Assembly: GCA_964057225.1 (NCBI GenBank)
Contig: OZ059895.1
Coordinates: 4,402,001 to 4,466,000, forward strand
From: Auanema rhodensis
Lineage: Eukaryota > Animalia > Nematoda
Direction of reading: 5' to 3'
DNA: 64,000 nt
The position numbers and the translations under genes are program-made. Within the stretch, counting starts at the first letter, position 1, and each line of letters opens with the position of its first letter. The notes under the pieces were generated by a model. It was not told the DNA's origin. It searched no databases and was given only the letters and a program-made list of their open reading frames with translations. Of this stretch, positions 6,001 to 37,349 are shown piece after piece.

Positions 6001-9000
6001 AGTAGATGTTTTTAGATTCCTTTTTTTAAGGCAAAAATGATGGACAATGTTATTAAACGAAAAAATTAATTCTTCAGGGTGAAAATCGAGGATATAAGTG
6101 TGAACTTATATCAGTTGATATCTCGGTGCATTTTTAAGCTAGCGCAAATCTGATAACACAGATCGACGCAGCTTAAAAATCCGCATCGAATGCACTATAC
6201 TACACTGAGAAACGCTTAATACAAAAATTAGTTATGATCGTTTGAAAAATGATGCATTAGTGTATGTTGAGTTTCCATGTACACTCAACATTGCTTCCAA
6301 AAACATTTTGACAAAAATTTTTTCGAAAAATTTCAAAATAATTTAGCAAAAAGTAGATGTTTTTAGATTCCTTTTTTTAAGGCAAAAATGATGGACAATG
6401 TTATTAAACGAAAAAATTAATTCTTCAGGGTGAAAATCGAGGATATAAGTGTGAACTTATATCAGTTGATATCTCGTTGCATTTTCAAGCTAGCGCAAAT
6501 CTGATAACACAGATCGACGCAGCTTAAAAATCCGCATCGAATGCACTATACTACATTGAGAAACGCTTAATACAAAAATTAGTTATGATCGTTTGAAAAA
6601 TGATGCATTAGTGTATGTTGAGTTTCCATGTACACTCAACATTGCTTCCAAAAACATTTTGACAAAAATTTTTTCGAAAAATTTCAAAATAATTTAGCAA
6701 AAAGTAGATGTTTTTAGATTCCTTTTTTTAAGGCAAAGATGATGGACAATGTTATTCAACGAAAAAATTAATTCTTCAGGGTGAAAATCGAGGATATAAG
6801 TGTGAACTTATATCAGTTGATATCTCGGTGAATTTTTAAGCTAGCGCAAATCTGATAACACAGATCGACGCAGCTTAAAAATCCGCATCGAATGCACTAT
6901 ACTACATTGAGAAACGCTTAATACAAAAATTAGTTATGATTGTTTGAAAAATGATGCATTAGTGTATGTTGAGTTTCCATGTACACTCAACATTGCTTCC
7001 AAAAACATTTTGACAAAAATTTTTTCGAAAAATTTCAAAATAATTTAGCAAAAAGTAGATGTTTTTAGATTCCTTTTTTTAAGGCAAAAATGATGGACAA
7101 TGTTATTAAACGAAAAAATTAATTCTTCAGGGTGAAAATCGAGGATATAAGTGTGAACTTATATCAGTTGATATCTCGGTGCATTTTTAAGCTAGCGCAA
7201 ATCTGATAACACAGATCGACGCAGCTTAAAAATCCGCATCGAATGCACTATACTACACTGAGAAACGCTTAATACAAAAATTAGTTATGATCGTTTGAAA
7301 AATGATGCATTAGTGTATGTTGAGTTTCCATGTACACTCAACATTGCTTCCAAAAACATTTTGACAAAAATTTTTTCGAAAAATTTCAAAATAATTTAGC
7401 AAAAAGTAGATGTTTTTAGATTCCTTTTTTTAAGGCAAAAATGATGGACAATGTTATTAAACGAAAAAATTAATTCTTCAGGGTGAAAATCGAGGATATA
7501 AGTGTGAACTTATATCAGTTGATATCTCGTTGCATTTTCAAGCTAGCGCAAATCTGATAACACAGATCGACGCAGCTTAAAAATCCGCATCGAATGCACT
7601 ATACTACATTGAGAAACGCTTAATACAAAAATTAGTTATGATCGTTTGAAAAATGATGCATTAGTGTATGTTGAGTTTCCATGTACACTCAACATTGCTT
7701 CCAAAAACATTTTGACAAAAATTTTTTCGAAAAATTTCAAAATAATTTAGCAAAAAGTAGATGTTTTTAGATTCCTTTTTTTAAGGCAAAGATGATGGAC
7801 AATGTTATTCAACGAAAAAATTAATTCTTCAGGGTGAAAATCGAGGATATAAGTGTGAACTTATATCAGTTGATATCTCGGTGAATTTTTAAGCTAGCGC
7901 AAATCTGATAACACAGATCGACGCAGCTTAAAAATCCGCATCGAATGCACTATACTACATTGAGAAACGCTTAATACAAAAATTAGTTATGATCGTTTGA
8001 AAAATGATGCATTAGTGTATGTTGAGTTTCCATGTACACTCAACATTGCTTCCAAAAACATTTTGACAAAAATTTTTTCGAAAAATTTCGAAATAATTTA
8101 GCAAAAAGTAGATGTTTTTAGATTCCTTTTTTTAAGGCAAAAATGATGGACAATGTTATTAAACGAAAAAATTAATTCTTCAGGGTGAAAATCGAGGATA
8201 TAAGTGTGAACTTATATCAGTTGATATCTCGGTGCATTTTTAAGCTAGCGCAAATCTCATAACACAGATCGACGCAGCTTAAAAATCCGCATCGAATGCA
8301 CTATACTACATTGAGAAACGCTTAATACAAAAATTAGTTATGATCGTTTGAAAAATGATGCATTAGTGTATGTTGAGTTTCCATGTACACTCAACATTGC
8401 TTCCAAAAACATTTTGACAAAAATTTTTTCGAAAAATTTCAAAATAATTTAGCAAAAAGTAGATGTTTTTAGATTCCTTTATTCAAGGCAAAGATGATGG
8501 ACAATGTTATTCAACGAAAAAACTTCAGGGTGAAAATCGAGGATATAAGTGTGAACTTATATCAGTTGATATCTCGGTGCATTTTCAAGCTAGCGCAAAT
8601 CTGATAACACAGATCGACGCAGCTTAAAAATCCGCATCGAATGCACTATACTACATTGAGAAACGCTTAATACAAAAATTAGTTATGATCGTTTGAAAAA
8701 TGATGCATTAGTGTATGTTGAGTTTCCATGTACACTCAACATTGCTTCCAAAAACATTTTGACAAAAATTTTTTCGAAAAATTTCAAAATAATTTAGCAA
8801 AAAGTAGATGTTTTTAGATTTCTTTTTTTAAGGCAAAGATGATGGACAATGTTATTCAACGAAAAAATTAATTCTTCAGGGTGAAAATCGAGGATATAAG
8901 TGTGAACTTATATCAGTTGATATCTCGTTGCATTTTCAAGCTAGCGCAAATCTGATAACACAGATCGACGCAGCTTAAAAATCCGCATCGAATGCACTAT

Positions 9001-11146
9001 ACTACATTGAGAAACGCTTAATACAAAAATTAGTTATGATCGTTTGAAAAATGATGCATTAGTGTATGTTGAGTTTCCATGTACACTCAACATTGCTTCC
9101 AAAAACATTTTGACAAAAATTTTTTCGAAAAATTTCAAAATAATTTAGCAAAAAGTAGATGTTTTTAGATTCCTTTATTCAAGGCAAAGATGATGGACAA
9201 TGTTATTCAACGAAAAAACTTCAGGGTGAAAATCGAGGATATAAGTGTGAACTTATATCAGTTGATATCTCGGTGCATTTTCAAGCTAGCGCAAATCTGA
9301 TAACACAGATCGACGCAGCTTAAAAATCCGCATCGAATGCACTATACTACATTGAGAAACGCTTAATACAAAAATTAGTTATGATCGTTTGAAAAATGAT
9401 GCATTAGTGTATGTTGAGTTTCCATGTACACTCAACATTGCTTCCAAAAACATTTTGACAAAAATTTTTTCGAAAAATTTCAAAATAATTTAGCAAAAAG
9501 TAGATGTTTTTAGATTTCTTTTTTTAAGGCAAAGATGATGGACAATGTTATTCAACGAAAAAATTAATTCTTCAGGGTGAAAATCGAGGATATAAGTGTG
9601 AACTTATATCAGTTGATATCTCGTTGCATTTTCAAGCTAGCGCAAATCTGATAACACAGATCGACGCAGCTTAAAAATCCGCATCGAATGCACTATACTA
9701 CATTGAGAAACGCTTAATACAAAAATTAGTTATGATCGTTTGAAAAATGATGCATTAGTGTATGTTGAGTTTCCATGTACACTCAACATTGCTTCCAAAA
9801 ACATTTTGACAAAAATTTTTTCGAAAAATTTCAAAATAATTTAGCAAAAAGTAGATGTTTTTAGATTCCTTTATTCAAGGCAAAGATGATGGACAATGTT
9901 ATTCAACGAAAAAACTTCAGGGTGAAAATCGAGGATATAAGTGTGAACTTATATCAGTTGATATCTCGGTGCATTTTCAAGCTAGCGCAAATCTGATAAC
10001 ACAGATCGACGCAGCTTAAAAATCCGCATCGAATGCACTATACTACATTGAGAAACGCTTAATACAAAAATTAGTTATGATCGTTTGAAAAATGATGCAT
10101 TAGTGTATGTTGAGTTTCCATGTACACTCAACATTGCTTCCAAAAACATTTTGACAAAAATTTTTTCGAAAAATTTCAAAATAATTTAGCAAAAAGTAGA
10201 TGTTTTTAGATTCCTTTTTTTAAGGCAAAAATGATGGACAATGTTATTAAACGAAAAAATTAATTCTTCAGGGTGAAAATCGAGGATATAAGTGTGAACT
10301 TATATCAGTTGATATCTCGGTGCATTTTCAAGCTAGCGCAAATCTGATAACACAGATCGACGCAGCTTAAAAATCCGCATCGAATGCACTATACAACATT
10401 GAGAAACGCTCAATACAAAAATTAGTTATGATCGTTTGAAAAATGATGCATTAGTGTATGTTGAGTTTCCATGTACACTCAACATTGCTTCCAAAAACAT
10501 TTTGACAAAAATTTTTTCGAAAAATTTCAAAATAATTTAGCAAAAAGTAGATGTTTTTAGATTCCTTTTTTCAAGGCAAAAATGATGGACAATGTTATTA
10601 AACGAAAAAATTAATTCTTCAGGGTGAAAATCGAGGATATAAGTGTGAACTTATATCAGTTGATATCTCGGTGCATTTTCAAGCTAGCGCAAATCTGATA
10701 ACACAGATCGACGCAGCTTAAAAATCCGCATCGAATGCACTATACTACATTGAGAAACGCTTAATACAAAAATTAGTTATGATCGTTTGAAAAATGATGC
10801 ATTAGTGTATGTTGAGTTTCCATGTACACTCAACATTGCTTCCAAAAACATTTTGACAAAAATTTTTTCGAAAAATTTCAAAATAATTTAGCAAAAAGTA
10901 GATGTTTTCAGATTCCTTTTTTTAAGGCAAAGATGATGGACAATGTTATTCAACAAAAAAATTAATTCTTCAGGGTGAAAATCGAGGATATAAGTGTGAA
11001 CTTATATCAGTTGATATCTCGGTGCATTTTCAAGCTAGCGCAAATCTGATAACACAGATCGACGCAGCTTAAAAATCCGCATCGAATGCACTATACTACA
11101 TTGAGAAACGCTTAATACAAAAATTAGTTATGATCGTTTGAAAAAT
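1..11146 (+). repeat. 351-bp AT-rich tandem satellite array, left block (about 32 monomers; subfamily with TACTACATT and mostly TTTAAGGC)
   Basis: The same sequence recurs at 1, 3511 (10x351) and 7021 (20x351). Monomers differ by a few substitutions. Three monomers carry a 6-bp deletion (near 8522, 9218, 9914). Confidence 0.99.
8470..10200 (+). repeat. 696-bp dimeric higher-order repeat (351-bp monomer plus 345-bp TTAATT-deleted monomer), about 2.5-3 copies
   Basis: CAACGAAAAAA|CTTCAGG deletion junctions at 8522, 9218 and 9914 are spaced exactly 696 bp and are always linked to the CCTTTATTCAAGG variant. Boundaries are approximate. Confidence 0.93.
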
Positions 11147-11527
11147 AGAATTTTTTTACTATAATAAGACGTAAAAAAGAGATTATATTTATTCGACTGT
11201 TAGCTATATTGTTTACATTGACCTCACGTTACAAAAAAAAAAATTTTTTTGAATAGGGTAATAAGACCGTGGGAAAGGCGGGCTTTAAGTATTGGCGGGA
11301 ACCGGGTTCTCAAGTCAATTCTATCAGTAAAACACTTCATAATTTCTAAAAAGTTAAAGGGGACACAAAACGATACTGACAGAGAGATCTTCGGATAAGG
11401 ATGAGCAGGATCTATCTTCTTGGAACTGGGTTCTTCGAGGGGCGTCGGAATCTAAAGAAAAACGTAATCTAGAGAGCGCGAGGAAGGGACTCCGTAGGTG
11501 GAGACCAAGGGGTGGAAGGTGGGACTC
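11147..11527 (-). repeat. 3' non-coding end of copy 1: right ITR plus 3' extension (rE, about 11147-11181). The inner ITR boundary cannot be defined because the left ITR is missing.
   Basis: 11144-11199 is a perfect 56-bp reverse complement of 11528-11583, and 11182-11206 is directly repeated at 11581-11605. This is the pattern expected for rE and the ITR end versus the ICR. Confidence 0.75.
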
Positions 11528-11605
11528 CAGTCGAATAAATATAATCTCTTTTTTACGTCTTATTATAGTAAAAAAATTCTATTATATTTATTCGACTGTT
11601 AGCTA
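11528..11605. other. Internal complementary region (ICR) of copy 1, the template for the circle junction
   Basis: On + it reads [element 3' end ...GTAAAAAAATTCT]-ATT-[ATATTTATTCGACTGTTAGCTA, the predicted 5' ITR start]. It has 18-bp inverted arms at 11528-11545 and 11581-11598 and overlaps the YR stop codon. Confidence 0.88.
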
Positions 11606-12684
11606 GTTAAAGAAAATAAGGAGTCCTGGAAAGAGCGTCTCTTGCAATAGTGTTTGAAGAAGGTGCTTTCCGAGGCCCAGTTAGCTGCGTCTAAGATAGT
11701 TTTGACAGGCAGTCCATTCTTAAAAGCTTTGGACGTAGCGGCAGCACGTACTGAGTGAGCTTTGAATTTTGTGGGGATTCCCGCTTCTTCTAGGCAAGTT
11801 CTAATCCAACCCGCTACCGTAGTTGCGACTACTGGTTCTCCTCTGTTAATGCTAACTAGAAGGTTTCGCGATCGACGAGTATGCATGGTAGCCGTCAGGT
11901 AGGCATTTATGCAATCAATGGGGCAGACAAGAGGGCGTTCTGAATGGCTTTCGAAACAAGCTTCGCGGGGAGGGCCCTTGCCCCTATTCTTGTTCCTGAA
12001 TTCGATGAAGAAGGTGACCCCTCGTGTGTCAAAGCGCATATGGTCGAGTGATAGCGCCGATAGTTCCGATGCTCGTTGAGGGGAGCACATAGCTAAGAGG
12101 GTAGCTAGCTTGCGGGTTAGACAGTCTAAGGACAGCGAATCGTTAGGACCTAGACTTTCTAGGTGAGCCAAGACCGTAGAAGGGTCCCAGATATCCATGT
12201 ATCTAGCGTGTGGAGGCTTGGAACGATATATCCCGCGGAGAAGCTTTTTTAACATCGGATCGTCCCGGAGTGGGGGAGTTACGGAATAGTGTTCAGCGAG
12301 AAGGCAGAGAGCCGCCCTTGCTGTAGCAGCTGAGGAAAAACCGTTGTTCTCTGCTCGATGGGCTAAGAAATTGGCAACATTTTTTGCATTGGGGATGAAC
12401 TCGATCTGGGATAGCTTGCAATAATTCTCCCAAGCTTTGTAAGCCGTGTTATATTGTTTTCGGGTACCAGGAGCGAAAGCGTTTACCAATAGTAGTTTGG
12501 TCTGGTCCGATATTCCTTCTATGTTGGCGGTGAAATCCTCCACGCCGCCAGGAAAAAATTTCTTGTCCCCAGGAGGGGGTGAGAGTTGCCTTTCTTGTCT
12601 TGGAGAAGGCTGGGATGATGGAGGCTCATTGGGGGTTCCTGGACTAGTTGGGACAGAAGGGGAAACCAGATCTGGCTTTTCCAA
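11599..12684 (-). CDS. Tyrosine recombinase of the DIRS element (true start uncertain; annotated start is TTG, first ATG is M144 at 12255)
   Basis: Catalytic signature R (SPQRASEL), HxxR (HSVR, 11746-11757), W and Y (ANWASESTFFKHY). N-terminal core-binding region APGTRKQYNTAYKAW. No internal stops. Confidence 0.95.
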   Translation of the reverse strand: MEKPDLVSPSVPTSPGTPNEPPSSQPSPRQERQLSPPPGDKKFFPGGVEDFTANIEGISDQTKLLLVNAFAPGTRKQYNTAYKAWENYCKLSQIEFIPNAKNVANFLAHRAENNGFSSAATARAALCLLAEHYSVTPPLRDDPMLKKLLRGIYRSKPPHARYMDIWDPSTVLAHLESLGPNDSLSLDCLTRKLATLLAMCSPQRASELSALSLDHMRFDTRGVTFFIEFRNKNRGKGPPREACFESHSERPLVCPIDCINAYLTATMHTRRSRNLLVSINRGEPVVATTVAGWIRTCLEEAGIPTKFKAHSVRAAATSKAFKNGLPVKTILDAANWASESTFFKHYCKRRSFQDSLFSLTS

Positions 12685-15176
12685 AGTGGAGCGATCAGGA
12701 TGGCCTGTCGTCCTGAGTCTGCCAACTTGTTGATGGTCCTCTTGAGGAGGTGGAAGGGCGGGAAGACGAAGAGAAGTCCTTGCGGCAGCAGTTTCCAGCT
12801 GTGAGAGAAGGCGTCTACGCAGAATGCGTTCTCGTCTAGAAGGAAAGAGCAGTAAAGTGGTGCCTTTGCGTTCCAGGAGGATGCAAAAAGATCAAATGAA
12901 GGGGTACCGAATCTTTGGAAAATACTCGCAGTCGTCTCCGGATGGAGGGACCAATCTTCGTGAAGGCATCTACCCCTGGAGAGTTGGTCTGCGATGTGAT
13001 TCAGTCTGCCGGCGATGTGCGTTGCTCTGACTCGGATATTGCGCTCCCTGCAGAAGTGCCAGAGCTTACGGGCTATTTCCGAACCTCGTTCTGAGGCCGA
13101 GCCACCCCGCCTGTTGATGTAAGTTATCGCCGATGTGTTATCGATTAACAGTAACACGTCAATATTGCACCACTCAGTGCCGAAATGGACCAGGGCTTTG
13201 AAGGCCGCAATAAGTTCCAACCAGTTTATGTGATAAGCATATCTCTCCTCGATTGACCATTTCCCTGAGATAGTGTTGCCTTCCCATGATGCTCCATATC
13301 CTTCACCGGAGGCGTCCGATGTAATGGACAGGGATGGAGAGAAGGGTACAAGTGAACTCGGGGAGCCTAGTGTGCAAGATTCTTCTGATAGGAAGGCACG
13401 TAAGGTATCCCGAAGGTCTCCTACAATAGAGACCTGAGCGGGAAGCTCGTTGGGGTCGTTTAGGTTGGGAAAACCTATGTCTCGTAAATCTCTTTGAGTT
13501 TGTCTAACCCAAAAGGAAAAATGTGGGTGTACCACAGTGGCGAAGTTGATTCTCCCGAGGAGGGAGGCCAGTTTCCGGAGTGGGGAGGCCTGGGATCTGA
13601 GAAGGACCGACAGGGAGGTGCTTATAGCCTCCCGTTTCTCTGTTGGCAGGCGCCATTCAAGTGAGCGCGTGTCTATTTCTAAACCTAGAAAATCGAGCGA
13701 TTGGGTAGGGCTTAAGATGGATTTAAGCATGTTAATAGAGAAACCCGCGTCACGGAATAGATCTATAGCACGAGACGCATGATCGGCCACTCTTGTGGCT
13801 GACCTGTCTAGAAAAAGCCAGTCGTCAAGGTAGTTGATTAGGCGAATTCCCTGATCCCTGAGGAGCGCTGCAAGCACCCTCATCAGCTTATGAAACACGT
13901 ATGGGGCTGCGTTTAGGCCGAAAGGAAGGACGCAGAACACGTATGATCTGCCCTCTATATCAAAGCCCAGGTAGGGTTGATGTTCTATTGCCACAGGGAT
14001 AGAATGATAGGCCGACTGGAAGTCCACCTTGCATAACCAATCATTGCGTTGCAACACCGATGGGAGGTCCCTAACGGATTCCAGCTTGAACCGGGGTGTC
14101 TCTATGAAGGTGTTAAGCGTCTTCAAGTTGAGGATAAAGCGGCTGGACCCATCGGACTTGGGTACTAGAAAAGTAGAGGACCGGAAGATCCTTTCCCCAG
14201 GTCTAGCCGGTCTGATTGCCCCCGTCTCCAAAAGCTCCGCAAGGAGAGGGTTAGCCCGAAGGGATTGCGGTAACGATGTCAGATTTGACAGAAGGCGCTT
14301 AGGTTTACTCCCTGCGAAAGGGAGGCGGTAGCCTTTTACCGTCTGAAGGATATCCTGGTCTTTAGAGAGGGAACCCCAAAAGTCTAGGTGGGACGAAAGA
14401 GCACCTGCTCGAAAATGGACGCACCTGCTATAGGAGTTAGCCTTGTGGATGGGTCGTGTTGATGGTCCCGATCGTTGGTTCGATGACGGTCTTGGACGTT
14501 GATGATCTCGGGAACTTGAATTGGTTCTTGAGTTTCTAGAGAGTTCAGAGAAAGCCGAGATTTCTGCCCTTAGCTTCTTTCCGAAGAGTTCCGGGACTGA
14601 GTCCTGAGAATAAAGATTAATAGACGTTGGTCGCTTATGGCATCCTACCTCCTGAGAGTTGTCGAGAGACATGGTAGAACCGTAGAGCGGGGCCCTTTTG
14701 TAGCTAGGCATAGCCTTGATGGGCTGAGAGTACTTCATTTTAAGAAGTGCGATCTCTCTGAGGTGAGTATAATCCGTCTTGATATTGGCGCTGAGGAATC
14801 TTTCTGTCACGTTGATGTATGCCTGTTGTTTGGAGGAAAGTGGAGACTTGTTATCGATCTTCGCAAGTTTCCTGATGATCCGTAGGCCGGCGAGCGCATT
14901 GAGCGTGTTCTCGTAAGAGGCCCTGATGTCAGCCTCGCTTATCTTCACTGATGGCTTGACTGAGCTATCCACGTGGGTGGTGTATTTCTCATCCAGGCAT
15001 GGTAGACGGGCGACTGGAGAATCAAGTATTGGGAGCTCAGATAAGATGTCGGCTCTTTCAGTGTGCGTCATGGAGCAACCGGAGGCAAGACGCTCGAAGT
15101 CGGCAAGTTCGGAACCGGAGAGGCGGACTACAGGCCTGGTTCTAGGTCCTTGAGATTCTGGTTTCATCGAATGCAC
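12519..15176 (-). CDS. DIRS polyprotein: Gag-like N-terminus (about 250 aa), reverse transcriptase, RNase H, N6-adenine methyltransferase-like domain. First ATG at 15167.
   Basis: RT motifs RFILNLK, KVDFQSAY, LPFGL, YLDD (13821-13832). RNase H motifs SDAS, INWLEL, IDN, NHIADQLSR. MT motifs DLFAS, DAF, FPPF, LIAPLW...WF. The Gag assignment is positional only. Confidence 0.95.
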   Translation of the reverse strand: MHSMKPESQGPRTRPVVRLSGSELADFERLASGCSMTHTERADILSELPILDSPVARLPCLDEKYTTHVDSSVKPSVKISEADIRASYENTLNALAGLRIIRKLAKIDNKSPLSSKQQAYINVTERFLSANIKTDYTHLREIALLKMKYSQPIKAMPSYKRAPLYGSTMSLDNSQEVGCHKRPTSINLYSQDSVPELFGKKLRAEISAFSELSRNSRTNSSSRDHQRPRPSSNQRSGPSTRPIHKANSYSRCVHFRAGALSSHLDFWGSLSKDQDILQTVKGYRLPFAGSKPKRLLSNLTSLPQSLRANPLLAELLETGAIRPARPGERIFRSSTFLVPKSDGSSRFILNLKTLNTFIETPRFKLESVRDLPSVLQRNDWLCKVDFQSAYHSIPVAIEHQPYLGFDIEGRSYVFCVLPFGLNAAPYVFHKLMRVLAALLRDQGIRLINYLDDWLFLDRSATRVADHASRAIDLFRDAGFSINMLKSILSPTQSLDFLGLEIDTRSLEWRLPTEKREAISTSLSVLLRSQASPLRKLASLLGRINFATVVHPHFSFWVRQTQRDLRDIGFPNLNDPNELPAQVSIVGDLRDTLRAFLSEESCTLGSPSSLVPFSPSLSITSDASGEGYGASWEGNTISGKWSIEERYAYHINWLELIAAFKALVHFGTEWCNIDVLLLIDNTSAITYINRRGGSASERGSEIARKLWHFCRERNIRVRATHIAGRLNHIADQLSRGRCLHEDWSLHPETTASIFQRFGTPSFDLFASSWNAKAPLYCSFLLDENAFCVDAFSHSWKLLPQGLLFVFPPFHLLKRTINKLADSGRQAILIAPLWKSQIWFPLLSQLVQEPPMSLHHPSLLQDKKGNSHPLLGTRNFFLAAWRISPPT
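12525..12561 (-). promoter_or_regulatory. Putative -1 programmed ribosomal frameshift signal (A_AAU_UUU heptamer plus stem-loop), copy 1
   Basis: Minus strand AGA AAT TTT TTC CTG in the Pol frame; the YR frame is -1. A downstream hairpin TGGCG-GC-GTGGA-GGAT-TTCAC-CGCCA spans 12550-12525. Confidence 0.5.
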
Positions 15177-15933
15177 TATACTACATTGAGAAACGCTTAA
15201 TACAAAAATTAGTTATGATCGTTTGAAAAATGATGCATTAGTGTATGTTGAGTTTCCATGTACACTCAACATTGCTTCCAAAAACATTTTGACAAAAATT
15301 TTTTCGAAAAATTTCAAAATAATTTAGCAAAAAGTAGATGTTTTTAGATTCCTTTTTTTAAGGCAAAGATGATGGACAATGTTATTCAACAAAAAAATTA
15401 ATTCTTCAGGGTGAAAATCGAGGATATAAGTGTGAACTTATATCAGTAGATATCTCGGTGCATTTTTAAGCCAGCGCAAATCTGATAACACAGATCGACG
15501 CAGCTTAAAAATCCGCATCGAATGCACTATACTACATTGAGAAACGCTTAATACAAAAATTAGTTATGATCGTTTGAAAAATGATGCATTAGTGTATGTT
15601 GAGTTTCCATGTACACTCAACATTGCTTCCAAAAACATTTTGACAAAAATTTTTTCGAAAAATTTCAAAATAATTTAGCAAAAAGTAGATGTTTTTAGAT
15701 TCCTTTTTTTAAGGCAAAAATGATGGACAATGTTATTAAACGAAAAAATTAATTCTTCAGGGTGAAAATCGAGGATATAAGTGTGAACTTATATCAGTTG
15801 ATATCTCGGTGCATTTTTAAGCTAGCGCAAATCTGATAACACAGATCGACGCAGCTTAAAAATCCGCATCGAATGCACTATACTACATTGAGAAACGCTT
15901 AATACAAAAATTAGTTATGATCGTTTGAAAAAT
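15165..15933 (+). repeat. Satellite spacer between the two elements (769 bp = 2x351 + 67)
   Basis: Same monomer and orientation as the flanking arrays, left-subfamily type (TACTACATT). Confidence 0.98.
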
Positions 15934-16314
15934 AGAATTTTTTTACTATAATAAGACGTAAAAAAGAGATTATATTTATTCGACTGTTAGCTATATTGTT
16001 TACATTGACCTCACGTTACAAAAAAAAAATTTTTTTTGAATAGGGTAATAAGACCGTGGGAAAGGCGGGCTTTAAGTATTGGCGGGAACCGGGTTCTCAA
16101 GTCAATTCTATCAGTAAAACACTTCATAATTTCTAAAAAGTTAAAGGGGACACAAAACGATACTGACAGAGAGATCTTCGGATAAGGATGAGCAGGATCT
16201 ATCTTCTTGGAACTGGGTTCTTCGAGGGGCGTCGGAATCTAAAGAAAAACGTAATCTAGAGAGCGCGAGGAAGGGACTCCGTAGGTGGAGACCAAGGGGT
16301 GGAAGGTGGGACTC
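15934..16314 (-). repeat. 3' non-coding end of copy 2: right ITR plus rE
   Basis: 15931-15986 is the reverse complement of 16315-16370, as in copy 1. Confidence 0.75.
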
Positions 16315-16392
16315 CAGTCGAATAAATATAATCTCTTTTTTACGTCTTATTATAGTAAAAAAATTCTATTATATTTATTCGACTGTTAGCTA
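16315..16392. other. ICR of copy 2
   Basis: Same sequence as 11528-11605. Confidence 0.88.
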
Positions 16393-17471
16393 GTTAAAGA
16401 AAATAAGGAGTCCTGGAAAGAGCGTCTCTTGCAATAGTGTTTGAAGAAGGTGCTTTCCGAGGCCCAGTTAGCTGCGTCTAAGATAGTTTTGACAGGCAGT
16501 CCATTCTTAAAAGCTTTGGACGTAGCGGCAGCACGTACTGAGTGAGCTTTGAATTTTGTGGGGATTCCCGCTTCTTCTAGGCAAGTTCTAATCCAACCCG
16601 CTACCGTAGTTGCGACTACTGGTTCTCCTCTGTTAATGCTAACTAGAAGGTTTCGCGATCGACGAGTATGCATGGTAGCCGTCAGGTAGGCATTTATGCA
16701 ATCAATGGGGCAGACAAGAGGGCGTTCTGAATGGCTTTCGAAACAAGCTTCGCGGGGAGGGCCCTTGCCCCTATTCTTGTTCCTGAATTCGATGAAGAAG
16801 GTGACCCCTCGTGTGTCAAAGCGCATATGGTCGAGTGATAGCGCCGATAGTTCCGATGCTCGTTGAGGGGAGCACATAGCTAAGAGGGTAGCTAGCTTGC
16901 GGGTTAGACAGTCTAAGGACAGCGAATCGTTAGGACCTAGACTTTCTAGGTGAGCCAAGACCGTAGAAGGGTCCCAGATATCCATGTATCTAGCGTGTGG
17001 AGGCTTGGAACGATATATCCCGCGGAGAAGCTTTTTTAACATCGGATCGTCCCGGAGTGGGGGAGTTACGGAATAGTGTTCAGCGAGAAGGCAGAGAGCC
17101 GCCCTTGCTGTAGCAGCTGAGGAAAAACCGTTGTTCTCTGCTCGATGGGCTAAGAAATTGGCAACATTTTTTGCATTGGGGATGAACTCGATCTGGGATA
17201 GCTTGCAATAATTCTCCCAAGCTTTGTAAGCCGTGTTATATTGTTTTCGGGTACCAGGAGCGAAAGCGTTTACCAATAGTAGTTTGGTCTGGTCCGATAT
17301 TCCTTCTATGTTGGCGGTGAAATCCTCCACGCCGCCAGGAAAAAATTTCTTGTCCCCAGGAGGGGGTGAGAGTTGCCTTTCTTGTCTTGGAGAAGGCTGG
17401 GATGATGGAGGCTCATTGGGGGTTCCTGGACTAGTTGGGACAGAAGGGGAAACCAGATCTGGCTTTTCCAA
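16386..17471 (-). CDS. Tyrosine recombinase, copy 2
   Basis: Protein identical to 11599-12684, with the R...HSVR...W...Y signature. Confidence 0.95.
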   Translation of the reverse strand: MEKPDLVSPSVPTSPGTPNEPPSSQPSPRQERQLSPPPGDKKFFPGGVEDFTANIEGISDQTKLLLVNAFAPGTRKQYNTAYKAWENYCKLSQIEFIPNAKNVANFLAHRAENNGFSSAATARAALCLLAEHYSVTPPLRDDPMLKKLLRGIYRSKPPHARYMDIWDPSTVLAHLESLGPNDSLSLDCLTRKLATLLAMCSPQRASELSALSLDHMRFDTRGVTFFIEFRNKNRGKGPPREACFESHSERPLVCPIDCINAYLTATMHTRRSRNLLVSINRGEPVVATTVAGWIRTCLEEAGIPTKFKAHSVRAAATSKAFKNGLPVKTILDAANWASESTFFKHYCKRRSFQDSLFSLTS

Positions 17472-19963
17472 AGTGGAGCGATCAGGATGGCCTGTCGTCC
17501 TGAGTCTGCCAACTTGTTGATGGTCCTCTTGAGGAGGTGGAAGGGCGGGAAGACGAAGAGAAGTCCTTGCGGCAGCAGTTTCCAGCTGTGAGAGAAGGCG
17601 TCTACGCAGAATGCGTTCTCGTCTAGAAGGAAAGAGCAGTAAAGTGGTGCCTTTGCGTTCCAGGAGGATGCAAAAAGATCAAATGAAGGGGTACCGAATC
17701 TTTGGAAAATACTCGCAGTCGTCTCCGGATGGAGGGACCAATCTTCGTGAAGGCATCTACCCCTGGAGAGTTGGTCTGCGATGTGATTCAGTCTGCCGGC
17801 GATGTGCGTTGCTCTGACTCGGATATTGCGCTCCCTGCAGAAGTGCCAGAGCTTACGGGCTATTTCCGAACCTCGTTCTGAGGCCGAGCCACCCCGCCTG
17901 TTGATGTAAGTTATCGCCGATGTGTTATCGATTAACAGTAACACGTCAATATTGCACCACTCAGTGCCGAAATGGACCAGGGCTTTGAAGGCCGCAATAA
18001 GTTCCAACCAGTTTATGTGATAAGCATATCTCTCCTCGATTGACCATTTCCCTGAGATAGTGTTGCCTTCCCATGATGCTCCATATCCTTCACCGGAGGC
18101 GTCCGATGTAATGGACAGGGATGGAGAGAAGGGTACAAGTGAACTCGGGGAGCCTAGTGTGCAAGATTCTTCTGATAGGAAGGCACGTAAGGTATCCCGA
18201 AGGTCTCCTACAATAGAGACCTGAGCGGGAAGCTCGTTGGGGTCGTTTAGGTTGGGAAAACCTATGTCTCGTAAATCTCTTTGAGTTTGTCTAACCCAAA
18301 AGGAAAAATGTGGGTGTACCACAGTGGCGAAGTTGATTCTCCCGAGGAGGGAGGCCAGTTTCCGGAGTGGGGAGGCCTGGGATCTGAGAAGGACCGACAG
18401 GGAGGTGCTTATAGCCTCCCGTTTCTCTGTTGGCAGGCGCCATTCAAGTGAGCGCGTGTCTATTTCTAAACCTAGAAAATCGAGCGATTGGGTAGGGCTT
18501 AAGATGGATTTAAGCATGTTAATAGAGAAACCCGCGTCACGGAATAGATCTATAGCACGAGACGCATGATCGGCCACTCTTGTGGCTGACCTGTCTAGAA
18601 AAAGCCAGTCGTCAAGGTAGTTGATTAGGCGAATTCCCTGATCCCTGAGGAGCGCTGCAAGCACCCTCATCAGCTTATGAAACACGTATGGGGCTGCGTT
18701 TAGGCCGAAAGGAAGGACGCAGAACACGTATGATCTGCCCTCTATATCAAAGCCCAGGTAGGGTTGATGTTCTATTGCCACAGGGATAGAATGATAGGCC
18801 GACTGGAAGTCCACCTTGCATAACCAATCATTGCGTTGCAACACCGATGGGAGGTCCCTAACGGATTCCAGCTTGAACCGGGGTGTCTCTATGAAGGTGT
18901 TAAGCGTCTTCAAGTTGAGGATAAAGCGGCTGGACCCATCGGACTTGGGTACTAGAAAAGTAGAGGACCGGAAGATCCTTTCCCCAGGTCTAGCCGGTCT
19001 GATTGCCCCCGTCTCCAAAAGCTCCGCAAGGAGAGGGTTAGCCCGAAGGGATTGCGGTAACGATGTCAGATTTGACAGAAGGCGCTTAGGTTTACTCCCT
19101 GCGAAAGGGAGGCGGTAGCCTTTTACCGTCTGAAGGATATCCTGGTCTTTAGAGAGGGAACCCCAAAAGTCTAGGTGGGACGAAAGAGCACCTGCTCGAA
19201 AATGGACGCACCTGCTATAGGAGTTAGCCTTGTGGATGGGTCGTGTTGATGGTCCCGATCGTTGGTTCGATGACGGTCTTGGACGTTGATGATCTCGGGA
19301 ACTTGAATTGGTTCTTGAGTTTCTAGAGAGTTCAGAGAAAGCCGAGATTTCTGCCCTTAGCTTCTTTCCGAAGAGTTCCGGGACTGAGTCCTGAGAATAA
19401 AGATTAATAGACGTTGGTCGCTTATGGCATCCTACCTCCTGAGAGTTGTCGAGAGACATGGTAGAACCGTAGAGCGGGGCCCTTTTGTAGCTAGGCATAG
19501 CCTTGATGGGCTGAGAGTACTTCATTTTAAGAAGTGCGATCTCTCTGAGGTGAGTATAATCCGTCTTGATATTGGCGCTGAGGAATCTTTCTGTCACGTT
19601 GATGTATGCCTGTTGTTTGGAGGAAAGTGGAGACTTGTTATCGATCTTCGCAAGTTTCCTGATGATCCGTAGGCCGGCGAGCGCATTGAGCGTGTTCTCG
19701 TAAGAGGCCCTGATGTCAGCCTCGCTTATCTTCACTGATGGCTTGACTGAGCTATCCACGTGGGTGGTGTATTTCTCATCCAGGCATGGTAGACGGGCGA
19801 CTGGAGAATCAAGTATTGGGAGCTCAGATAAGATGTCGGCTCTTTCAGTGTGCGTCATGGAGCAACCGGAGGCAAGACGCTCGAAGTCGGCAAGTTCGGA
19901 ACCGGAGAGGCGGACTACAGGCCTGGTTCTAGGTCCTTGAGATTCTGGTTTCATCGAATGCAC
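17306..19963 (-). CDS. DIRS polyprotein (Gag-like, RT, RNase H, MT), copy 2. First ATG at 19954.
   Basis: Protein identical to 12519-15176. Confidence 0.95.
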   Translation of the reverse strand: MHSMKPESQGPRTRPVVRLSGSELADFERLASGCSMTHTERADILSELPILDSPVARLPCLDEKYTTHVDSSVKPSVKISEADIRASYENTLNALAGLRIIRKLAKIDNKSPLSSKQQAYINVTERFLSANIKTDYTHLREIALLKMKYSQPIKAMPSYKRAPLYGSTMSLDNSQEVGCHKRPTSINLYSQDSVPELFGKKLRAEISAFSELSRNSRTNSSSRDHQRPRPSSNQRSGPSTRPIHKANSYSRCVHFRAGALSSHLDFWGSLSKDQDILQTVKGYRLPFAGSKPKRLLSNLTSLPQSLRANPLLAELLETGAIRPARPGERIFRSSTFLVPKSDGSSRFILNLKTLNTFIETPRFKLESVRDLPSVLQRNDWLCKVDFQSAYHSIPVAIEHQPYLGFDIEGRSYVFCVLPFGLNAAPYVFHKLMRVLAALLRDQGIRLINYLDDWLFLDRSATRVADHASRAIDLFRDAGFSINMLKSILSPTQSLDFLGLEIDTRSLEWRLPTEKREAISTSLSVLLRSQASPLRKLASLLGRINFATVVHPHFSFWVRQTQRDLRDIGFPNLNDPNELPAQVSIVGDLRDTLRAFLSEESCTLGSPSSLVPFSPSLSITSDASGEGYGASWEGNTISGKWSIEERYAYHINWLELIAAFKALVHFGTEWCNIDVLLLIDNTSAITYINRRGGSASERGSEIARKLWHFCRERNIRVRATHIAGRLNHIADQLSRGRCLHEDWSLHPETTASIFQRFGTPSFDLFASSWNAKAPLYCSFLLDENAFCVDAFSHSWKLLPQGLLFVFPPFHLLKRTINKLADSGRQAILIAPLWKSQIWFPLLSQLVQEPPMSLHHPSLLQDKKGNSHPLLGTRNFFLAAWRISPPT
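17312..17348 (-). promoter_or_regulatory. Putative -1 frameshift signal, copy 2
   Basis: Same heptamer and hairpin as 12525-12561. Confidence 0.5.
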
Positions 19964-22900
19964 TATACTACATTGAGAAACGCTTAATACAAAAATTAGT
20001 TATGATCGTTTGAAAAATGATGCATTAGTGTATGTTGAGTTTCCATGTACACTCAACATTGCTTCGAAAAACATTTTGACAAAAATTTTTTCGAAAAATT
20101 TCAAAATAATTTAGCAAAAAGTAGATGTTTTTAGATTCCTTTTTTTAAGGCAAAGATGATGGACAATGTTATTCAACGAAAAAATCAATTCTTCAGGGTG
20201 AAAATCGAGGATATAAGTGTGAACTTATATCAGTTGATATCTCGGTGCATTTTTAAGCTAGCGCAAATCTGATAACACAGATCGACGCAGCTTAAAAATC
20301 CGCATCGAATGCACTATACTACATTGAGAAACGCTTAATACAAAAATTAGTTATGATCGTTTGAAAAATGATGCATTAGTGTATGTTGAGTTTCCATGTA
20401 CACTCAACATTGCTTCCAAAAACATTTTGACAAAAATTTTTTCGAAAAATTTCAAAATAATTTAGCGAAAAGTAGATGTTTTTAGATTCCTTTTTTCAAG
20501 GCAAAGATGATGGACAATGTTATTCAACGAAAAAATCAATTCTTCAGGGTGAAAATCGAGGATATAAGTGTGAACTTATATCAGTTGATATCTCGGTGCA
20601 TTTTTAAGCTAGCGCAAATCTGATAACACAGATCGACGCAGCTTAAAAATCCGCATCGAATGCACTATACTTCATTGAAAAACGCTTAATACAAAAATTA
20701 GTTATGATCGTTTGAAAAATGATGCATTAGTGTATGTTGAGTTTCCATGTACACTCAACATTGCTTCCAAAAACATTTTGACAAAAATTTTTTCGAAACA
20801 TTTCAAGATAATTTAGCAAAAAGTAGATGTTTTTAGATTCCTTTTTTCAAGGCAAAGATGATGGACAATGTTATTCAACGAAAAAATCAATTCTTCAGGG
20901 TGAAAATCGAGGATATAAGTGTGAACTTATATCAGTTGATATCTCGGTGCATTTTTAAGCTAGCGCAAATCTGATAACACAGATCGACGCAGCTTAAAAA
21001 TCCGCATCGAATGCACTATACTTCATTGAAAAACGCTTAATACAAAAAATAGTTATGATCGTTTGAAAAATGATGCATTAGTGTATGTTGAGTTTCCATG
21101 TACACTCAACATTGCTTCCAAAAACATTTTGACAAAAATTTTTTCGAAAAATTTCAAAATAATTTAGCAAAAAGTAGATGTTTTTAGATTCCTTTTTTCA
21201 AGGCAAAGATGATGGACAATGTTATTCAACGAAAAAATCAATTCTTCAGGGTGAAAATCGAGGATATAAGTGTGAACTTATATCAGTTGATATCTCGGTG
21301 CATTTTTAAGCTAGCGCAAATCTGATAACACAGATCGACGCAGCTTAAAAATCCGCATCGAATGCACTATACTACATTGAGAAACGCTTAATACAAAAAT
21401 TAGTTATGATCGTTTGAAAAATGATGCATTAGTGTATGTTGAGTTTCCATGTACACTCAACATTGCTTCCAAAAACATTTTGACAAAAATTTTTTCGAAA
21501 AATTTCAAAATAATTTAGCAAAAAGTAGATGTTTTTAGATTTCTTTTTTCAAGGCAAAGACGATGGACAATGTTATTCAACGAAAAAATTAATTCTTCAG
21601 GGTGAAAATCGAGGGTATATGTGTGAAGTTATATCAGTTGATATCTCGGTGCATTTTCAAGCTAGCGCAAATCTGATAACACAGATCGACGCAGCTTAAA
21701 AATCCGCATCGAATGCACTATACTACATTGAGAAACGCTTAATACAAAAATTAGTTATGATCGTTTGAAAAATGATGCATTAGTGTATGTTGAGTTTCCA
21801 TGTACACTCAACATTGCTTCCAAAAACATTTTGACAAAAATTTTTTCGAAAAATTTCAAAATAATTTAGCAAAAAGTAGATGTTTTTAGATTCCTTTTTT
21901 TAAGGCAAAGATGATGGACAATGTTTTTAAACGAAAAAATTAATTCTTCAGTGTGAAAATCGAGGATATAAGTGTGAACTTATATCAGTTGATATCTCGG
22001 TGCATTTTCAAGCTAGCGCAAATCTGATAACACAGATCGACGCAGCTTAAAAATCCGCATCGAATGCACTATACTTCATTGAGAAACGCTTAATACAAAA
22101 ATTAGTTATGATCGTTTGAAAAATGATGCATTAGTGTATGTTGAGTTTCCATGTACACTCAACATTGCTTCCAAAAACATTTTGACAAAAATTTTTTCGA
22201 AAAATTTCAAAATAATTTAGCAAAAAGTAGATGTTTTTAGATTCCTTTTTCCAAGGCAAAGACGATGGACAATGTTATTCAACGAAAAAATTAATTCTTC
22301 AGGGTGAAAATCGAGGATATATGTGTGAACTTATATCAGTTGATATCTCGGTGCATTTTCAAGCTAGCGCAAATCTGATAACACAGATCGACGCAGCTTA
22401 AAAATCCGCATCGAATGCACTATACTCCATTAAGAAACGCTTAATACAAAAATTAGTTATGATCGTTTGAAAAATGATGCATTAGTGTATGTTGAGTTTC
22501 CATGTACACTCAACATTGCTTCCAAAAACATTTTGACAAAAATTTTTTCGAAAAATTTCAAAATAATTTAGCAAAAAGTAGATGTTTTTAGATTCCTTTT
22601 TTCAAGGCAAAGACGATGGACATTGTTATTCAACGAAAAAATTAATTCTTTAGGGTGAAAATCGAGGATATAAGTGTGAACTTATATCAGTTGATATCTC
22701 GGTGCATTTTCAAGCTAGCGCAAATCTGATAACACAGATCGACGCAGCTTAAAAATCCGCATCGAATGCAGTATACTTCATTGAGAAACGCTTAATACAA
22801 AAATTAGTTATGATCGTTTGAAAAATGATGCATTAGTGTATGTTGAGTTTCCATGTACACTCAACACTGCTTCCAAAAACATTTTGACAACAATTTTTTC

Positions 22901-25900
22901 GAAAAATTTCAAAATAATTTAGCAAAAAGTAGATGTTTTTAGATTCCTTTTTTCAAGGCAAAGATGATGGACAATGTTATTCAACGAAAAAATTAATTCT
23001 TCAGGGTGAAAATCGAGGATATAAGTGTGAACATATATCAGTTGATATCTCGGTGCATTTTCAAGCTAGCGCAAATCTGATAACACAGATCGACGCAGCT
23101 TAAAAATCCGCATCGAATGCACTATACTTCATTGAGAAACGCTTAATACAAAAATTAGTTATGATCGTTTGAAAAATGATGCATTAGTGTATGTTGAGTT
23201 TCCATGTACACTCAACATTGCTTCCAAAAACATTTTGACAAAAATTTTTTCGAAAAATTTCAAAATAATTTAGCAAAAAGTAGATGTTTTTAGATTCCTT
23301 TTTTCAAGGCAAAGATGATGGACAATGTTATTCAACGAAAAAATCAATTCTTCAGGGTGAAAATCGAGGATATAAGTGTGAACTTATATCAGTTGATATC
23401 TCGGTGCATTTTCAAGCTAGCGCAAATCTGATAACACAGATCGACGCAGCTTAAAAATCCGCATCGAATGCTTTATACTTCATTGAGAAACGCTTAATAC
23501 AAAAATTAGTTATGATCGTTTGAAAAATGATGCATTAGTGTATGTTGAGTTTCCATGTACACTCAACATTGCTTCCAAAAACATTTTGACAAAAATTTTT
23601 TCGAAAAATTTCAAAATAATTTAGCAAAAAGTAGATGTTTTTAGATTCCTTTTTTCAAGGCAAAGATGATGGACAATGTTATTCAACGAAAAAATCAATT
23701 CTTCAGGGTGAAAATCGAGGATATAAGTGTGAACTTATATCAGTTGATATCTCGGTGCATTTTCAAGCTAGCGCAAATCTGATAACACAGATCGACGCAG
23801 CTTAAAAATCCGCATCGAATGCACTATACTTCATTGAGAAACGCTTAATACAAAAATTAGTTATGATCGTTTGAAAAATGATGCATTAGTGTATGTTGAG
23901 TTTCCATGTACACTCAACATTGCTTCCAAAAACATTTTGACAAAAATTTTTTCGAAAAATTTCAAAATAATTTAGCAAAAAGTAGATGTTTTTAGATTCC
24001 TTTTTTCAAGGCAAAGATGATGGACAATGTTATTCAACGAAAAAATTAATTCTTCAGGGTGAAAATCGAGGATATAAGTGTGAACATATATCAGTTGATA
24101 TCTCGGTGCATTTTCAAGCTAGCGCAAATCTGATAACACAGATCGACGCAGCTTAAAAATCCGCATCGAATGCACTTTACTTCATTGAGAAACGCTTAAT
24201 ACAAAAATTAGTTATGATCGTTTGAAAAATGATGCATTAGTGTATGTTGAGTTTCCATGTACACTCAACATTGCTTCCAAAAACATTTTGACAAAAATTT
24301 TTTCGAAAAATTTCAAAATAATTTAGCAAAAAGTAGATGTTTTTAGATTCCTTTTTTCAAGGCAAAGATGATGGACAATGTTATTCAACGAAAAAATTAA
24401 TTCTTCAGGGTGAAAATCGAGGATATAAGTGTGAACATATATCAGTTGATATCTCGGTGCATTTTCAAGCTAGCGCAAATCTGATAACACAGATCGACGC
24501 AGCTTAAAAATCCGCATCGAATGCACTATACTTCATTGAGAAACGCTTAATACAAAAATTAGTTATGATCGTTTGAAAAATGATGCATTAGTGTATGTTG
24601 AGTTTCCATGTACACTCAACATTGCTTCCAAAAACATTTTGACAAAAATTTTTTCGAAAAATTTCAAAATAATTTAGGAAAAAGTAGATGTTTTTAGATT
24701 CCTTTTTTCAAGTCAAAGACGATGGACAATGTTATTCAACGAAAAAATTAATTCTTCAGGGTGAAAATCGAGGATATAAGTGTGAACTTATATCAGTTGA
24801 TATCTCGGTGCATTTTCAAGCTAGCGCAAATCTGATAACACAGATCGACGCAGCTTAAAAATTTGCATCGAATGCACTATACTTCATTGAGAAACGCTTA
24901 ATACAAAAACTAGTTATGATCGTTTGAAAAATGATGCATTAGTGTATGTTGAGTTTCCATGTACACTCAACATTGCTTCCAAAAACATTTTGACAAAAAT
25001 TTTTTCGAAAAATTTCAAAATAATTTAGGAAAAAGTAGATGTTTTTAGATTCCTTTTTTCAAGTCAAAGACGATGGACAATGTTATTCAACGAAAAAATT
25101 AATTCTTCAGGGTGAAAATCGAGGATATATGTGTGAACTTATATCAGTTGATATCTCGGTGCATTTTCAAGCTAGCGCAAATCTGATAACACAGATCGAC
25201 GCAGCTTAAAAATTTGCATCGAATGCACTATACTTCATTGAGAAACGCTTAATACAAAAACTAGTTATGATCGTTTGAAAAATGATGCATTAGTGTATGT
25301 TGAGTTTCCATGTACACTCAACATTGCTTCCAAAAACATTTTGACAAAAATTTTTTCGAAAAATTTCAAAATAATTTAGCGAAAAGTAGATGTTTTTAGA
25401 TTCCTTTTTTCAAGGCAAAGATGATGGACAATGTTATTCAACGAAAAAATTAATTCTTCAGGGTGAAAATCGAGGATATAAGTGTGAACATATATCAGTT
25501 GATATCTCGGTGCATTTTCAAGCTAGCGCAAATCTGATAACACAGATCGACGCAGCTTAAAAATTTGCATCGAATGCACTATACTTCATTGAGAAACGCT
25601 TAATACAAAAACTAGTTATGATCGTTTGAAAAATGATGCATTAGTGTATGTTGAGTTTCCATGTACACTCAACATTGCTTCCAAAAACATTTTGACAAAA
25701 ATTTTTTCGAAAAATTTCAAAATAATTTAGGAAAAAGTAGATGTTTTTAGATTCCTTTTTTCAAGTCAAAGACGATGGACAATGTTATTCAACGAAAAAA
25801 TTAATTCTTCAGGGTGAAAATCGAGGATATAAGTGTGAACTTATATCAGTTGATATCTCGGTGCATTTTCAAGCTAGCGCAAATCTGATAACACAGATCG

Positions 25901-36900: not shown

Positions 36901-37349
36901 TCAACATTGCTTCCAAAAACATTTTGACAAAAATTTTTTCGAAAAATTTCAAAATAATATAGCAAAAAGTAGATGTTTTTAGATTCCTTTTTTCAAGGCA
37001 AAGACGATGGACATTGTTATTCAACGAAAAAATTAATTCTTCAGGGTGAAAATCGAGGATATAAGTGTGAACTTATATCAGTTGATATCTCGGTGCATTT
37101 TCAAGCTAGCGCAAATCTGATAACACAGATCGACGCAGCTTAAAAATCCGCATCGAATGCACTATACTTCATTGAGAAACGCTTAATACAAAAATTAGTT
37201 ATGATCGTTTGAAAAATGATGCATTAGTGTATGTTGAGTTTCCATGTACACTCAACATTGCTTACAAAAACATTTTGACAACAATTTTTTCGAAAAATTT
37301 CAAAATAATTTAGCAAAAAGTAGATGTTTTTAGATTCCTTTTTTCAAGG

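Follow-up and report, generated by a model that had tools for sequence, protein, structure and literature searches.

Two DIRS copies in a satellite array

The window (the whole stretch of 64,000 nucleotides that was analysed) contains two copies of a DIRS element within a satellite, and the question raised by this locus is how an element that lacks one of its ends came to lie in two different monomers. Both copies are on the minus strand, measure 4,018 bp, and break the 351-bp satellite at the same ATT, with the same junctions on both sides. The two inserts (11147-15164 and 15934-19951) differ at a single base (11243/16030), which is a homopolymer-boundary shift (A11T7 versus A10T8). The rest of the window is the 351-bp tandem array (31.8 + 2.2 + 125.5 copies). 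The sequence-only reading had reported two DIRS copies in the satellite with the same junctions and four identical 67-bp segments (11080-11146, 15165-15231, 15867-15933, and 19952-20018), and its coordinates were confirmed. The features of the element were as follows.

11147..15164, minus strand: DIRS copy 1, 5'-truncated, 4,018 bp
11144..11146, minus strand: ATT at the right junction, matching the ICR circle-junction triplet (PMC3266345); 15931-15933 in copy 2
11147..11181, minus strand: right extension (rE), 35 bp, complementary to the ICR only
11182..11206, minus strand: outer right ITR, the same 25 nt as the ICR left half (100% match to 11581-11605); the inner boundary of the right ITR cannot be set without a left ITR
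11528..11605, minus strand: ICR, 78 nt; 16315-16392 in copy 2
11528-11583, minus strand: ICR right half, 56 nt, 100% complementary to 11144-11199
11581-11605, minus strand: ICR left half, overlapping the right half at the junction triplet
11599..12684, minus strand: open tyrosine recombinase (YR) ORF with R204, H310-x-x-R313, W336, and Y346
12519..15176, minus strand: open frame of 885 aa (gag remnant, RT, RNase H, and methyltransferase)
15164..15167, minus strand: 5' truncation junction, within gag
15934..19951, minus strand: DIRS copy 2, same truncation; YR 16386-17471, gag-pol 17306-19963

Both copies showed an exact right end, the ICR, and open gag-RT-RH-MT and YR frames. The ICR was complementary to the right end over 56 perfectly matched nucleotides including the ATT, its left half measured 25 nt, and the triplet at which its halves overlap also terminates the element. 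This agrees with published DIRS integration, in which the right end equals the ICR complement and ends in ATT (PMC3266345, PMC7192593). A left ITR was looked for in both copies and not found, as the sequence-only reading had stated, and four relatives (L003, L008, L012, and L013) showed a left ITR matching their own ICR or right ITR. Three relatives (L003, L007, and L008) also showed an RS-rich gag N-terminus upstream of the point where the window copies start, and the missing 5' part, comprising the left ITR and the gag N-terminus, came to ~700-750 bp against intact relatives.

Coding content and relatives

The element showed an RVT_1 domain (E 1e-19) and a Phage_integrase domain (E 7e-12), with a tyrosine recombinase in place of a DDE integrase; together with the ICR these bear out the earlier identification as DIRS. 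The 885-aa frame carries RT YLDD at 449 and methyltransferase motifs DLFAS at 762 and FPPF at 805. In an alignment with relatives (A1), YLDD and the RNase H acidic residues were invariant. The methyltransferase follows RNase H and its DLFAS/FPPF motifs align with those of relatives; homologues have Pfam Dam, and the window protein itself gave no Pfam methyltransferase match. The region of the YR ORF that matches relatives runs from ~12546 down. Codons 1-4 of the 885-aa frame are satellite sequence, the satellite ATG at 15167-15165 being in frame with the remaining gag. A randomly placed junction would have an in-frame ATG exactly there in 2% of cases (calculated post hoc), and the model that we prefer below leaves this coincidence unexplained.

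RT/RNase H, methyltransferase, tyrosine recombinase, ICR, and tree placement were all those of DIRS1-like elements, and the pair of ITRs was incomplete, the left one being absent. DIRS1-like elements are also expected to make no long target-site duplication; here the 67-bp repeat reads equally as a deletion of 284+351n bp, the two being indistinguishable in a tandem array. The window copies share with published DIRS1-like elements (PMC3266345, PMC7192593) the gene order gag-RT-RH-MT then YR, the ICR halves overlapping at a triplet, the right ITR with rE, and the ATT terminus, but differ from them in lacking the left ITR, 5' UTR, and RS-rich gag N-terminus. Both copies are truncated derivatives of the DIRS1-like family and not intact members. 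A PAT/Ngaro structure (split direct repeats A1...B1 A2 B2) was rejected, since the matches were all inverted except for a direct one of 34 nt that follows from the ICR geometry.

A quick tree placed the window element in a clade of 15 rows (SH-aLRT 98), in which all named members are nematode elements. The nearest relative overall was Logan contig L001 (55% pol and 59% YR identity), and the nearest named ones were the Oesophagostomum dentatum KHJ94801.1 locus (L008) and elements of Steinernema and Panagrolaimus. Judged by protein identity (55-59% at best), the lineage is apparently undescribed, and the databases searched contained nothing close to it. Metagenome scans found no relatives, viral contigs gave distant RTs only, Rfam gave no match in satellite or element, and no YR relative was found in the PDB. 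None of the contigs resembled human sequence. The gag-region search, which covers proteins 0.55-1.75 times the query length and is silent on other kin, gave no match. In contrast to the window copies, the relatives with flanks (L008, L012, and L013) were located outside satellite. No paper on a satellite-targeting DIRS was found in an incomplete coverage of the literature.

The 67-bp repeat and the flanking monomers

To place the insertions in the array, we used the following satellite features.

1..11146, plus strand: satellite, left haplotype domain (19A, 195T, 204A/223A, 303T)
10729..11079, plus strand: monomer D, left of copy 1, with rare 227A as in monomer A across copy 1
11032..11146, plus strand: longest identical left flank, 115 bp; partner 15819-15933
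11080..11146, plus strand: 67-bp satellite segment (monomer positions 1-67) at the right end of copy 1
15165..15933, plus strand: spacer of 2 monomers + 67 bp (769 bp), matching neither outer flank
15165-15515 and 15516-15866, plus strand: monomers A and B, parts of the spacer
15165..15278, plus strand: longest identical right flank, 114 bp, containing the 67-bp segment 15165-15231; partner 19952-20065
19952..64000, plus strand: satellite right of copy 2, a transition zone to ~22,000 and then the right haplotype domain (235C, 12G, 132C, 274A)

Taken alone, the 67-bp repeat does not exceed what chance would give. The exact 67 bp was present at 33 of 161 monomer starts and in 22 of the 28 full-length left-domain monomers. 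It does not speak for a target duplication, since an interruption at any point of such an array can be read either as a duplication of k bp or as a deletion of 351-k. As evidence for a target-site duplication or a special motif the repeat was therefore set aside, being explained by array register and found in most left monomers.

The flanks common to both copies extended to at most 115/114 bp, which is within what unrelated monomers show (null medians of 98 and 186 bp). A plain tandem duplication of 4,787 bp gave at best 10 mismatches in the 769-bp spacer versus 1 in 4,018 in the element (P ~1e-7). Since the flank haplotypes reject such a duplication, the element with its 67 bp evidently entered a new monomer as a unit, and on this point the sequence-only reading was right.

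Monomer B was identical to the commonest left haplotype, and the D-A and B-E pairs each showed 4 differing sites. Sharing of rare variants was mostly confined to monomers lying close together, at 0.115 per pair for distance 1 and 0.005 for distances beyond 15; because of this, and of the rare 227A that they share, D and A look like a pair of old intact neighbours. With the elements removed, the order C-D-A-B-E-F forms a plausible gradient. Monomers around the elements showed 0.79 private variants each versus 0.11 per monomer, and turnover at this seam is therefore slow. In pure satellite there were near-exact blocks of 1.2-5.5 kb, some of them non-adjacent, the exact duplicated block had a median of ~1 kb, and offsets of 2-3 monomers were common among identical monomers.

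Origin of the second copy

The second copy is best read as a passenger of array turnover; this reading draws on one window and two copies. We think it probable, by a modest measure, that a normal YR insertion was followed by a 5' deletion and then by a single round of host gap repair that used a misaligned sister as template. A full-length DIRS1-like element would have integrated through its own tyrosine recombinase at the ATT of a satellite monomer; the right end, exact to the base and complete with its rE and ATT, points to this. A deletion would then have taken the left ITR, 5' UTR, and RS-rich gag N-terminus together with 284+351n bp of satellite, so that what remains of the array would look like a direct repeat of 67 bp; comparison with the relatives shows the truncation, and a deletion is its presumed cause. 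Very recently, host homologous recombination would have copied the insert to the monomer boundary two units off. The chromatid would have broken near positions 304-351 or 1-114 of a monomer, and the broken end would have invaded a sister lying two monomers out of register, been extended through the 4-kb insert, and annealed back in the next monomer (gap repair/SDSA). Double unequal exchange would leave an identical structure. The proposed pathway is consistent with the shortness of the shared flanks. By calculation, breaks at positions 1-67 alone (19% of the monomer) yield exactly the element + 67 bp. Gap repair is reported to copy multi-kb inserts in Drosophila and C. elegans. Copy 2, at the seam of the haplotype domains, is weakly favoured as donor.

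The earlier reading had named insertion, deletion, and later copying as its simpler alternative. This scheme became our best model, but it fails if the copying is a tandem duplication, insertion into a new monomer being needed. Standard retrotransposition of the truncated copy was rejected, as the published model needs left-ITR sequence and the satellite showed no match to the predicted left end.

The same product is expected if a 4,085-bp circle re-integrates, and the data favour a local process over a circle. In a recombinase-free version, 67-bp segments of one chromatid would recombine to release the circle, which would re-enter nearby by homology. This predicts the exact product and the short shared flanks, and a circle or conversion that brings one extra monomer from the other copy is disfavoured by comparison, with 3 mismatches in 418 bp. 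However, excision within only ~67-115 bp of homology would be needed and then re-integration, and a free circle would not be restricted to nearby monomers, whereas the copies lie two monomers from each other (P=0.025 under random placement); we regard this route as unlikely. Fairly improbable, too, is a multi-step turnover, either a tandem duplication followed by at least 2 conversions or unequal exchanges, or an older pair recently homogenised by conversion. The array does turn over, monomer B, as the commonest left haplotype, would be an abundant conversion donor, and duplication of A-B-element with later loss of A-B gives the same structure. Such turnover would nevertheless need breakpoints no more than ~115 bp from a junction on both sides with the elements staying identical, in an array where the median block is ~1 kb, at a seam that is slow, and with 227A awkwardly flanking copy 1 on both sides. 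We give a very low probability to an assembly artefact in which two one-copy haplotypes were joined through a common monomer B. The sole difference between the copies is of a kind typical of consensus errors, and many left monomers have exactly the sequence of monomer B, but the element, identical in the two alleles, would have to be flanked on each side by monomers that differ between them, the order without the elements is plausible as it stands, and the 9-kb locus is within the span of long reads.

The sequence-only reading had proposed a self-spreading unit that homes to satellite monomers. Here a YR, its own or from intact relatives, would act at the satellite ATT, by exchange or by cutting, and the unit of element and 67 bp would spread from monomer to monomer without a left ITR. 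The YR frame is open with its predicted catalytic residues present, the ATT (monomer positions 65-67) lies within the inferred exchange window, the satellite supplies the in-frame ATG for gag-pol, DIRS proteins work in trans (PMC7192593), and the copies are without long shared flanks, as homing predicts. Against this, just 2 of the 161 monomers of the window are occupied, and these are near neighbours. Linkage did not drop at the ATT, with a mean |D'| of 0.84 compared with 0.86, in a coarse test across monomer position 65 with ~117 right-domain monomers. The satellite and the left end predicted from the ICR share no 8-mer, the target and the circle junction have just the triplet in common, published work proposes that the left ITR serves as promoter and as template for end repair (PMC7192593), and the flanked relatives reside elsewhere than in satellite. 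We therefore did not retain the homing unit, and consider active homing highly improbable. The same small weight falls on its wider form, in which a DIRS without left ITR would be a DNA-level homing parasite, read from the satellite ATG, with its recombinase acting at the monomer ATT so that element and 67 bp would be copied or integrated into unoccupied monomers without reverse transcription. If a recombinase did drive the copying, a retrotransposon would have turned into a DNA-level homing element and the target choice of a DIRS recombinase could be read in vivo from the locus, a subject that has had no experimental study so far (PMC7192593).

Comparison with other array systems

On the preferred reading, in which host repair copied the insert, the locus would show cleanly, and very soon after the event, how a 4-kb insert was copied into another satellite monomer along with hardly any flank, and disabled transposons could multiply through array repair, beyond unequal crossing-over alone. 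The CENP-A test over the array suggested by the sequence-only reading would be of limited use if the host is a holocentric nematode. Group I intron homing endonucleases home by cut-and-convert, and the product has the same form as here, in that an insert is copied, together with short co-converted flanks, to an equivalent site that was empty. Unlike group I introns, the window element encodes no endonuclease, and it showed no sign of a site-specific break or spread.

Conversion-type turnover of satellite arrays with retrotransposon inserts is described for maize CRM and Arabidopsis CEN178/ATHILA (reviewed in PMC10984392). These arrays resemble the present one in the gain and loss of inserts without exchange of flanking markers and in local duplications of 2-3 monomers. 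CRM and ATHILA are integrase-bearing LTR elements in monocentric plant centromeres, whereas here the setting is a satellite array in a host that is probably a nematode. In Bacillus rossius, 5'-truncated and degenerate R2 copies were multiplied by rDNA turnover (PMC4370867). As here, a non-retrotransposing copy with one shared truncation multiplies via host recombination of a tandem array, although R2 is a site-specific non-LTR element truncated during insertion and the window element is a DIRS. R2 is thought to duplicate with the whole rDNA unit, whereas here at most ~115 bp of flank per side came along, which sets a local bound on the co-copied flank.

Truncated DIRS1-like inserts in the satellite array

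An AT-rich tandem array with a 351-bp monomer fills the window (31.8, 2.2 and 125.5 copies at 98% match), apart from two 4,018-bp inserts of ~50% GC that break it up. The features referred to below are:

10729-11079, satellite monomer D, left of copy 1
11147-15164, minus strand, DIRS insert, copy 1
15165-15515, satellite monomer A, right of copy 1 in the spacer
15165-15933, spacer between the inserts
15934-19951, minus strand, DIRS insert, copy 2

The two inserts differed by one base, a shifted A/T homopolymer boundary. Their junctions were the same and all four 67-bp segments were identical, which bears out the two inserts, shared junctions and 67-bp brackets described in the sequence-only reading. 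An imperfect 14-bp palindrome was present in every monomer just past the insertion site (15245-15272).

The minus strand of the insert carried an open 885-aa frame with a gag remnant and RT, RNase H and methyltransferase motifs, and an open tyrosine recombinase (YR) frame with its catalytic residues. A 78-nt internal complementary region (ICR) was located after the YR; its right half was a perfect 56-nt complement of the right end of the element, ATT included, and its left half repeated 25 nt of the right inverted terminal repeat (ITR). The ICR layout and ATT end were like those of DIRS1-like elements, in which ATT is the commonest terminal triplet (PMC3266345). As the right end, ICR and ATT match this anatomy, the right junction reads as an ordinary recombinase product. 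All coding and ICR features of the family were found, whereas the left ITR was absent from the inserts. The insert is a 5'-truncated DIRS1-like element.

The left ITR was present in all relatives with enough DNA (contigs L003, L008, L012 and L013), and an RS-rich gag N-terminus lay upstream of the start point of the window copies in L003, L007 and L008. We estimated the missing sequence at ~700-750 bp from alignments to L008 (the Oesophagostomum dentatum KHJ94801.1 locus) and L003. The intact element of L008 was seemingly nested in a degenerate inverted-repeat (MITE-like) element (8411-8614 and 14754-14941).

The satellite supplies an ATG (15165-15167) that abuts the truncation junction and is in the reading frame of gag-pol. 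This was noticed post hoc; for a random junction the chance of an ATG exactly there is 2%, and of some in-frame ATG 21%. Microhomology to the sequence that was lost may explain the ATG, but it also leaves room for translation of the copies from transcripts that start in satellite.

Relatives of the element

The closest relative was the Logan contig L001 (55% in pol, 59% in YR). Differences were concentrated at third codon positions (523 vs 213 at second), so selection for function has acted on the lineage. In a quick tree the element fell into a clade (SH-aLRT 98) in which every named member comes from a nematode, pointing to a probable nematode host. It is a member of a new DIRS lineage. None of the contigs seemed to be of human origin. 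L001 starts (1-60) ~50 nt from the gag truncation point of the window copies, probably through an assembly break at an upstream low-complexity region. The pol stop and YR start overlap in L001 (ATGA, 2541-2544); the window copy had no ATG at the matching place (12500-12560). Its gag also contained 15 inserted residues (about 165-179, in the region 12970-15176) that L001 and other relatives lack.

Origin of the second copy

All monomers in the window were typed by variants. At the 4,787-bp offset, identity ended just 115 bp to the left of the element and 114 bp to its right, about as far as between unrelated monomers (null medians 98 and 186 bp). Plain tandem duplication predicts a spacer built from the beginning of the outer right flank and the end of the outer left flank; it was rejected, as its best fit left 10 mismatches in 769 bp, compared with 1 in the 4,018 bp of the element (P about 1e-7). 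A unit with one extra monomer from the other copy was disfavoured (3 mismatches in 418 bp). Rare variants were shared mostly between near neighbours, and 227A was common to D and A, which flank copy 1. Given the short flanks, the tandem-duplication misfit and the shared 227A, the element plus 67 bp entered a new monomer boundary as one unit, the geometry that the sequence-only reading had proposed.

In a tandem array, junctions at different monomer positions read as k bases duplicated or 351-k deleted; here k=67, equivalent to a deletion of 284+351n. The exact 67 bases occurred in 22 of the 28 full-length monomers of the left haplotype domain, so perfect identity is expected and the 67-bp repeat by itself is uninformative on mechanism.

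Routes to the present structure

The same product is expected from each of three routes: gap repair on a misaligned sister chromatid, a 4,085-bp circle that re-integrates, or exchange by the recombinase at ATT. Standard retrotransposition was rejected for both copies because they lack the left ITR, which in the published DIRS model is the promoter and leaves a remnant needed for end rebuilding via the ICR (PMC7192593). The window favours gap repair. Beyond the observed structure, truncation and short shared flanks, we infer the order of events, donor and repair pathway as follows. A deletion would have taken off the 5' end of the element plus satellite; a break at monomer positions 1-67, repaired across the insert on a misaligned sister, would then add exactly the element plus 67 bp. 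These positions make up 19% of the monomer, or a calculated 46% at most with end trimming. Identical monomers often lay two or three monomers apart, and pure satellite also held near-exact blocks of 1.2-5.5 kb, not all of them adjacent. At copy 2, the left variants 204A/223A disappear and the right variant 235C begins, on the flank next to the deleted 5' end. This is a weak hint that copy 2 came first and had a larger deletion.

We lean towards a truncated member of a new DIRS lineage copied once by host recombination. Passive re-integration of the circle into a monomer would give the same structure but is unlikely, as the insert sites are separated by two monomers (P=0.025 if they were placed at random among the 161), which favours gap repair. 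Multi-step array turnover producing the pair has a similarly small chance. Recombinase-driven homing at the satellite ATT, the unit proposed from the sequence alone, matches in the form of the product and would be of far greater interest than host recombination, but this window showed neither spread nor a site hotspot: none of the remaining monomers was occupied and, in a coarse test, satellite-variant linkage showed no drop across ATT. The triplet was the sole sequence shared by the target and the predicted circle junction. We consider homing improbable, and a literature search turned up no account of DIRS elements that home to satellite. Our basis was one window and two copies. We give very little weight to an assembly artefact. 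The case is real and mostly ordinary; the copies behave like truncated R2 copies multiplied by rDNA turnover (PMC4370867) and like retrotransposons gained or lost in satellite arrays by a conversion-type process (PMC10984392).

Haplotype domains and repeat blocks of the array

Two haplotype domains that have expanded recently meet in the region 10378-23800 (distance 8.1 between vs 4.3 and 5.8 within), where the monomers around the elements carry about seven times more private variants (0.79 vs 0.11 per monomer). A 14-monomer (4,914-bp) higher-order duplication lay at 37091-47500, with 5,484 bp at <=1 mismatch, and further duplicated blocks were a 7-mer (about 28,700) and a 6-mer (about 50,300). 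A trimer repeat was found at 5833-7938, and at 8290-10026 a dimer of 345-bp and 351-bp monomers was repeated three times, the 345-bp form having a 6-bp deletion at 234-239.
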